A stretch of 64,000 nucleotides of DNA from Hydrolagus colliei (taxonomy: Eukaryota). Numbering within the stretch: position 1 is the stretch's first letter; each line of letters opens with the position of its first letter. Location of the stretch: the NCBI GenBank assembly GCA_035084275.1, contig CM068771.1:4030001-4094000 (forward strand). The letters run 5' to 3'. The translations under genes were made by a program, and so were the position numbers. The notes beneath the pieces are model-generated. The model searched no databases, was not told the origin of the DNA, and saw nothing but the letters and a program-made list of their open reading frames with translations. Below, piece by piece: positions 4,873 to 5,468 of this stretch.

Positions 4873-5081
4873 TGTCCTGCCGTCTGTACGTGAGCGCGTC
4901 TGTACGTGACTTAGATCCTTTGGCTCCGAATCGCTGTCCCAATGTCAGTGAGTCTTGGACTGAAGTCGCCGCGAAGGTGTTTTCCTCTTTATGTCTTCTT
5001 CTTGTAGCTCCGTCCTTCGCTCTCTCTCTTCTTTCTCTCGCTCTCCCTTCTTGTTTCTCAGGCTTTCAGTCTCTCAGCCCC

Positions 5082-5468
5082 TCTCAGTGTCAGTCTGTCT
5101 CAGTGTCAGTCTGTCTCAGTGTCAGTCTGTCTCAGTGTCAGTCTGTCTCAGTGTCAGTCTGTCTCAGTGTCAGTCTGTCTCAGTGTCAGTCTGTCTCAGT
5201 GTCAGTCTGTCTCAGTGTCAGTCTGTCTCAGTGTCAGTCTGACTCAGTGTCAGTCTGTCTCAGTGTCAGTCTGACTCTCAGTCTGTCTCAGTGTCAGTCT
5301 GTCTCAGTGTCAGTCTGTCTCAGTGTCAGTCTGTCTCAGTGTCAGTCTGTCTCAGTGTCAGTCTGTCTCAGTGTCAGTCTGTCTCAGTGTCAGTCTGTCT
5401 CAGTGTCAGTCTGTCTCAGTGTCAGTCTGTCTCAGTGTCAGTCTGACTCTCAGTCTGTCTCAGTGTCT
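5082..5468. repeat. 16-bp tandem repeat (GTCAGTCTGTCTCAGT)n, about 24 units, inside the predicted HSP70 5' UTR
   Basis: Directly visible, with occasional variant units (GTCAGTCTGACTCTCAGT). Lies between the TATA box and the ATG. Confidence 0.95.

Follow-up and report, generated by a model that had tools for sequence, protein, structure and literature searches.

The HSP70 locus and its promoter

The window, that is, the whole 64-kb stretch of Hydrolagus colliei DNA analysed here, carries on its minus strand an HSP70 gene (start codon at 4872-4870) that combines an intronless, full-length open reading frame with a C-terminal EEVD, as is typical of HSPA1-type genes, and its relatives belong to PF00012. 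Upstream of the predicted leader, an inverted CCAAT box, TGACGTCA, a GC box and a TATA box follow one another in the canonical order. The features of the gene, its leader and its promoter are as follows.

2665..2670, minus strand: poly(A) signal ATTAAA with a GU-rich (TG)n stretch after it; predicted from the sequence
2968..4872, minus strand: intronless HSP70 coding sequence, 634 amino acids, C-terminal EEVD; stop codon TAA at 2970-2968, translation without internal stops
4873..5468, minus strand: predicted 5' leader, 596 nt, no ATG, 37% A and 12% T; start site predicted from the TATA box and the Inr-like element
4873..4979, minus strand: unique leader segment of ~107 nt with the Kozak context GACAATGG at its end; alignable with Callorhinchus milii
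4980..5081, minus strand: degenerate tract rich in purines (GA / CTGAGA), adjoining the array on its 3' side; aligns with a GA-rich tract of C. milii
5082..5467, minus strand: 16-nt minisatellite, unit ACTGAGACAGACTGAC, 24.6 copies, 67 DRACH, 47 CUG
5465..5471, minus strand: Inr-like CTCAGAC; A 5468 is the predicted +1; distance to the first T of the TATA box, 31 nt
5494..5499, minus strand: TATA box (TATATA); ATATACAG is invariant in C. milii
5517..5526, minus strand: GC box CCCCGCCCAC; CCCGCCCACA is invariant in C. milii
5570..5577, minus strand: CRE/ATF-like TGACGTCA; invariant in C. milii
5615..5619, minus strand: inverted CCAAT box (ATTGG) within GATTGGCCGCC; invariant in C. milii
5640..5654, minus strand: proximal HSE-like site CTTCCTGAAGTCTCC; the TTCCTTCCTGA block is conserved in C. 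milii
5715..6066, minus strand: second minisatellite, sense TGAGCCCCTCCCCCAGGTC, 19 nt x 18.5 copies; splits the promoter
6277..7143, minus strand: distal HSE-like cluster of degenerate repeated modules, 18 HSE-like matches

HSE-like sites, defined as nGAAnnTTCnnGAAn with at most one mismatch and counted across the 64-kb window, are strongly concentrated in this region, with 19 of the 30 falling within 5469-7200, where 0.8 would be expected. These elements lie upstream of the TATA/CCAAT/GC-box core, the arrangement of heat-inducible HSP70 promoters, and, judged by its elements, the promoter is a real heat-shock promoter. Its distal part (6277-7248) consists of degenerate modules (CAGCTGGAAATCAGCCAAA..TTCA), each with HSE-like sites, including a pair of 62-nt modules that are located 323 nt apart and share 77% identity, which suggests an old tandem amplification of HSE-bearing units; similar 'gctgatttccag' modules are found in the C. 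milii promoter. The distal cluster is separated from the core promoter by the second minisatellite (5715-6066, 96% matches), a young array of 19-nt units that reads CCCCTCCCCC in the sense direction and GGGGGAGGGG on the plus strand, is absent from the C. milii orthologue and may form structures of the GC-box/CT-element or G4/i-motif type. The core promoter of HSP70 is flanked by the two largest arrays that the 64-kb window contains.

Elsewhere in the window, we identified a TRIM-type RING/B-box exon (minus strand, 439-918), two PRY/SPRY exons (minus strand, 10163-11098 and 21133-21750) and a reverse-transcriptase ORF (plus strand, 62554-63819). Three plus-strand ORFs (4872-5597, 5323-6228 and 5628-6164) were rejected as genes, being stop-free repeat artefacts that extend over both arrays; the antisense frames of the 16-nt array contain 0-2 stops. 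An Rfam match resembling SCARNA7 in the 3' UTR/poly(A) region (2577-2743, minus strand) scores 29.8 bits against a gathering threshold of 65, overlaps the (TG)n tract and is probably due to chance.

A 16-nt minisatellite makes up most of the predicted leader

Tandem Repeats Finder (TRF) delineates the leader array on the minus strand at 5082-5467, with 24.6 copies, 94% matches and a score of 695, far beyond chance. The copies are arranged head to tail with a period of 16, within the range of minisatellites (~10-100 nt), and 19 units match the sense consensus ACTGAGACAGACTGAC exactly. The array accounts for 386 of the 596 nt (65%) of the predicted leader, in good agreement with the ~24 units and ~385 of ~596 nt given in an earlier note on this DNA, and its edge at 5467 adjoins the Inr-like A at 5468. 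The same note proposed that the HSP70 5' leader consists mostly of the array. Both this position of the TATA box and the Inr-like element at the array edge and the comparison with C. milii described below lend support to the proposal, the leader itself being predicted.

When rotated, the consensus unit reads GACA-GACT-GACA-CTGA. Classification as a period-4 GACA/GATA (Bkm-type) microsatellite was rejected: the period is 16, and only two of the four tetramers are GACA, so that the array is at most a derivative of such a repeat. A dimer of the unit yielded 0 matches in a metagenome scan, and a search of 2400-7400 against Rfam 15 at a permissive E-value returned nothing near a gathering score, the two matches in the array region having E ~0.7.

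The units of the array are not all alike. A variant block of 28 nt (ACTGAGACAG + ACTGAGAGTCAGACTGAC) is present twice, at 5464-5437 and 5292-5265, and this repetition, with a spacing of 172 nt, is a higher-order duplication within the array, indicating that unequal exchange is ongoing. The array is likely a young, homogenized minisatellite of the VNTR kind. Its copy number may differ among individuals, with the 172-nt duplication and the complete turnover of the unit relative to C. milii as indirect hints drawn from the one haplotype at hand. The degenerate purine-rich tract at its 3' side (4980..5081) is the probable seed sequence from which the array would have grown.

The orthologous gene of C. 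milii carries a different array at the same site

The protein closest to the window HSP70 is the C. milii 'heat shock 70 kDa protein 1B-like' (P0017; 94% identity), with the remaining vertebrate HSP70s being at most 89% identical and other full-length ones ~84%. In the phylogenetic tree, the two form a sister pair with a support of 100/100. Identity between the two genes amounts to 94% at the amino-acid level and 76% at 4-fold sites, a difference that signifies purifying selection on HSP70. The flanks of the C. milii locus (L001) are collinear with the window, a TRIM RING/B-box exon lying to one side of HSP70 and PRY/SPRY exons to the other, and TRIM and V-set/PRY-SPRY genes are arranged around HSP70 in the same way in both. 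On the strength of protein similarity, phylogeny and gene order, the window holds the locus orthologous to L001. Expression of the C. milii gene is indicated solely by the deposited cDNA-derived protein AFK10521.1. The C. milii protein ends in EEVH (in both the genome- and the cDNA-derived protein; L001 11890-11905), whereas the window protein retains EEVD (2971-2982), the canonical co-chaperone-binding motif. No further holocephalan HSP70 proteins were recovered by a search with the N-terminal region, and an exact-protein look-up with the window HSP70 and the cDNA-derived C. milii protein (P0122) matched no contigs.

The similarity extends to the regulatory region. The core promoters are 79% identical, with TGACGTCA, the GC box and ATATACAG being invariant; both species have an intact first CCAAT box, and the second reads ATTGC in the window. 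The last ~200 nt of the leader are 81% identical. At the same place as in the window, immediately after the TATA box, the C. milii locus contains an array (L001 9162-9816, 655 bp, 84% matches), which would make up ~80% of the C. milii leader. The unit differs, however: it is GAGAGCACAGCCACAGCCACAGAGTGACC with a 23-nt variant (23/29 nt, ~24 copies). The window unit aligns best with degenerate sequence at the 3' edge of the array in C. milii (9790-9920, ACCGAGAGAGACCGAGAGACTGAGAGAGAGACTGAGAGTGAGACAGA), with a score of 23, compared to 7.5+-2.7 for shuffled units, none of 500 of which reached 23; the match to the array proper is weaker (17 versus 8.4+-3.0 for shuffled units). The arrays of both species are poor in T (13% of the sense strand in the window and 3% in C. 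milii), contain 35-37% A, lack ATG and fold weakly.

Minisatellites of this size are scarce in both loci, amounting to only 1.5% of the sequence in the window and 3.5% in L001. Two arrays at one position are therefore unlikely to have arisen as independent accidents and point instead to an inherited repeat-prone tract. The retention of an array at one site in two holocephalans, with complete turnover of the unit and with no such array in the sharks compared below, is a small new fact.

Elasmobranch HSP70 genes lack a leader array

For comparison, we considered four intronless HSP70 genes from three elasmobranchs, namely Heptranchias (L002 and L004), Carcharodon (L003) and Heterodontus (L005). 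All have the same promoter layout, with predicted leaders of ~66-226 nt (TATA-based estimates), and their folding energy per nucleotide is similar to that of the window leader. No leader array was found in any of the four (L002-L005), so that the array appears to be holocephalan-specific, as judged from four array-free genes that may or may not be 1:1 orthologues of the holocephalan gene. Positions 1-3369 of the Heterodontus francisci locus L005 are taken up by a minisatellite with a 20-nt unit (AATGGGTGAGCAGAGGGGGA; at least 166 copies, more than 3.3 kb) that runs off the locus at one end and terminates ~630 bp upstream of the hsp70 ATG at the other. Large arrays beside HSP70 promoters may be recurrent in cartilaginous fishes.

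A probable reading: a tolerated minisatellite with a passive filter on its units

The explanation that we consider somewhat probable, and lean towards here, is that the array is a lineage-specific minisatellite, still turning over and tolerated in a slippage-prone, purine-rich HSP70 leader, with its DRACH motifs arising as a by-product. In the ancestor shared with C. milii, the stretch just after the TATA box probably consisted of simple sequence rich in purines and prone to slippage (GAGAC/CTGAGA/GACW). Replication slippage and unequal exchange would then have expanded one unit in the lineage of the window (16 nt x 24.6) and another in that of C. milii (23/29 nt x ~24). Expandable units would pass a filter that admits those with no AUG, stops in all frames, few T residues and weak folding; units of this kind would leave 43S scanning to the conserved Kozak ATG unblocked, and the array would therefore persist. 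The high DRACH count would follow from the GACA-GACT-GACA-CTGA make-up without being selected, and any effect on expression would be exerted through leader length and composition, and through copy number if the array is polymorphic. We infer both the slippage origin and the near-neutrality from sequence comparison.

Motifs of this class arise by mutation in the Hydrolagus colliei genome, given that a degenerate tract derived from (TG)n, with a period of 87 nt (35300-35760), ~30 kb away and in an unrelated context, resembles the array with a similarity score of 21 versus 8.3+-2.7, the GTCTCAGTGT..CAGT core being common to this tract and the plus strand of the array. The tract adjoins an N run (36181-36541). 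Two observations count in the other direction. Three DRACH motifs per unit are rare for the base composition, being found in 0.17% of shuffled units, and the retention of an array at one site over a divergence of ~0.29 substitutions per 4-fold site (the 76% identity after Jukes-Cantor correction) could reflect selection for having a repeat there.

The properties on which the filter would act were assessed directly. Neither the array nor the rest of the leader contains ATG, which bears out the earlier remark that the unit lacks AUG. The array has 47 CUG codons, which could open only tiny uORFs because UGA stops occur in all three sense frames (15-17 per frame, with at most 18 codons between stops). 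AUG-freeness was rejected as more than a weak sign of selection: 78% of shuffled units are likewise free of ATG, the non-array parts give P = 0.33 and 0.12, and the P of ~0.002 for the whole leader is inflated, because the shuffles break the repeat. The claim that the unit has little self-complementarity held in part. Pairing between CUG and CAG of different units gives a minimum free energy of -140.1 kcal/mol, lower than that of dinucleotide shuffles (z = -4.4), which contradicts it, but the centroid structure is almost unpaired, and the energy per nucleotide (-0.235, and -0.26 kcal/mol/nt for the array) is considerably weaker than that of the coding sequence (-0.352).

Does the composition of the leader aid translation under stress?

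Instead of being tolerated, a leader that is long, rich in A and purines, poor in T, free of AUG and weakly structured could lower the need for eIF4F and helicase activity under stress independently of its sequence, a property classically credited to the Hsp70 leader of Drosophila. In that case, composition, rather than the unit, would be the shared property under selection. The two holocephalan arrays indeed share position, T-poverty, A content, absence of ATG and weak folding, that of C. milii reaching only -0.10 kcal/mol/nt despite 62% GC, and according to a review, HSP70 mRNA is translated in a non-canonical manner that does not depend on an IRES but requires the 5' UTR during heat stress (PMC9065632). 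However, the window array folds better than its own shuffles, and the HSP70 genes of elasmobranchs do without such length, their predicted leaders being much shorter at a similar energy per nucleotide. Moreover, AUG-free, T-poor and weakly folded arrays are as well accounted for by a passive filter as by positive selection. We regard a selected role of this kind as unlikely.

DRACH motifs and m6A

The earlier note had counted ~70 DRACH motifs in the array, three per unit (AGACA, AGACU and UGACA), and the count holds up well: we found 67 in the array, 45 of them RRACH, and 76 in the predicted leader. The note also quoted correctly that m6A in the mammalian Hsp70 5' UTR promotes cap-independent translation, an effect that involves a single site, A103; methylation of this position in the HSP70 mRNA leader supports eIF3/ABCF1-dependent initiation during heat shock (PMC9065632). 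Like the mammalian leader, that of the window contains the DRACH consensus expected of an A103-type element. DRACH densities, per 100 nt, are as follows.

Window array: 17.4
C. milii array: 3.5
Non-array leader parts (window, C. milii): 3.8-5.4
Elasmobranch leaders: 2.8-3.1
Coding sequence: 1.9

The array might serve as an m6A platform, in which METTL3/14 would methylate the ~67 DRACH sites, initiation factors would be recruited in the manner of eIF3/ABCF1 and copy number would tune cap-independent translation during heat shock. The excess of motifs over the coding sequence and the rarity of units with three DRACH, noticed post hoc, are in keeping with this proposal, as is the gene structure. 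Exclusion by exon-junction complexes blocks m6A, a constraint that would not apply to an intronless gene. The mammalian precedent is real as well, although the effect there needs one site rather than ~70 (PMC9065632).

The comparison with C. milii does not favour this proposal. The DRACH content of the orthologous array is at background, although a shared density would be expected if DRACH content were under selection at this site. The GACW substructure of the unit accounts for the motif count without selection: DRACH richness results from the GACA-GACT-GACA-CTGA make-up, a derivative of GACW-type simple sequence, which is always dense in DRACH, and shuffling of the array with dinucleotides preserved already yields 60.7 sites versus the 67 observed. 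Furthermore, GGAC is absent from the array, and one third of the sites are of the weak UGACA type. The direction of the m6A effect on the stress response is not universal either; in Drosophila, Mettl3-dependent m6A is reported to be enriched in 5' UTRs and to dampen the heat-stress response of the brain (PMC9474545). A copy-number-tunable m6A element selected for its DRACH sites gains no comparative support, and we consider such a platform quite unlikely.

A broader proposition is that the repeat-built HSP70 leader of holocephalans would be a long-kept functional module, that is, a long, AUG-free, purine/A-rich platform that recruits initiation factors cap-independently and, through rapid changes in copy number, tunes heat-shock translation heritably. 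We judge it decidedly improbable, and the same judgement covers it jointly with its extension to Hydrolagus colliei, where the module would also be an m6A target with ~67 sites.

Start site, splicing and a role as DNA

All readings at the RNA level presuppose that the array is transcribed and retained. The earlier note had placed the start near 5468 on the basis of a TATA box and an Inr-like CTCAGA, and we concur, locating these elements at 5499-5494 (TATATA) and 5471-5465 (CTCAGAC); the start remains a prediction. A 5468 lies 31 nt downstream of the first T of TATATA, at canonical spacing, and both a start at this position and the presence of the array in the mRNA are what this geometry would predict.

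If transcription instead began downstream, or if a leader intron removed the repeat, the array would lie outside the mature mRNA and act, if at all, as DNA, for example, as a promoter-proximal spacer, a nucleosome-disfavouring tract or a cluster of AGAC/CAGAC (SMAD-type) motifs with one TGAGTCA (AP-1-type) site. The array does contain ~48 AGAC and 24 CAGAC motifs as well as one perfect TGAGTCA (5248-5233), and the second array within the promoter (5715-6066) indicates that the region is repeat-prone as DNA. Against a downstream start stand the canonical TATA/Inr geometry and the conservation of the TATA box; the alternative TATA-like CATAAAG in the leader was rejected, because it reads CACAGAG in C. 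milii and is thus unconserved. An intron that removes the array was likewise set aside as unlikely. The consensus unit has no GT, and those in the array belong to three variant AGA|GTCAGA sites, which are poor donors. There is no real polypyrimidine tract, the best acceptor-like AG being preceded by 65% pyrimidines and none within the array by more than 47%. Nor are candidate acceptors shared by the two species: where C. milii has cttcgcAG, the window has cttcgcGG, and gacttcAG of the window corresponds to gactccAC in C. milii. The SMAD and AP-1 readings were also rejected, since CAGAC and TGAGTCA are absent from the C. milii unit and the AP-1 site is single. Overall, an array outside the mRNA seems highly doubtful.

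Mis-assembly of the length or the very presence of the array is extremely improbable: perfect short tandem repeats are error-prone in assemblies, but the independent C. milii genome has an array at the same site, the internal variants follow an orderly higher-order pattern and the unique flanks are collinear with the orthologue.

Comparison with known systems

Most simply, the array is an ordinary minisatellite in an unusual place. If it is part of the mRNA, the leader would be among the most repeat-dominated known for an inducible HSP70 (two thirds here and ~80% in C. milii), would serve as a natural experiment on the amount of unstructured repeat that can be accommodated in an mRNA translated under stress and would offer a natural multi-DRACH substrate for ideas on 5'-UTR m6A outside mammals. 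The combination of the same site with different units and different DRACH densities separates the retention of a repeat from the retention of its motifs.

The closest known kind of element is the 5'-UTR VNTR, such as the 28-bp repeat of TYMS. Copy number of this human repeat (TSER, 2R/3R) is linked to the expression level (PMC3320636, PMC2528158). Both are minisatellites located in a 5' untranslated region (predicted in our case) near the start site, but TSER consists of 2-3, rarely more, GC-rich 28-bp copies with documented polymorphism, whereas here ~24 copies of an A-rich 16-mer make up 65% of the leader. The A103 system of mammalian HSPA1A concerns the same gene family and the same region of the mRNA and likewise features DRACH; unlike its single mapped site in a short unique leader (PMC9065632), the motifs described here are repeat-borne, predicted and unconserved in the orthologous array. 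With the Bkm-type GACA/GATA repeats, the array shares a unit that decomposes into GACA-GACT-GACA-CTGA, but its TRF period is 16, not 4, as in a higher-order derivative; GACA repeats are known within transcripts (PMC2346481).

The window leader, as predicted, is A-rich, AUG-free and weakly structured, in which it resembles the Hsp70 leader of Drosophila. The latter comprises ~250 nt of unique, A-rich sequence with little structure and is needed for heat-shock translation, a function that has been shown experimentally; the leader described here is built of a tandem array instead. The nearest counterpart is the leader array of the C. milii 1B-like gene, which belongs to the orthologous gene, starts after the TATA box, precedes a GA-rich tract and a conserved leader segment and is also AUG-free and T-poor, but differs in its 23/29-nt unit GAGAGCACAGCCACAGCCACAGAGTGACC, its length (655 bp), its lower homogeneity (84% matches), its DRACH density (3.5 per 100 nt) and its much weaker folding.
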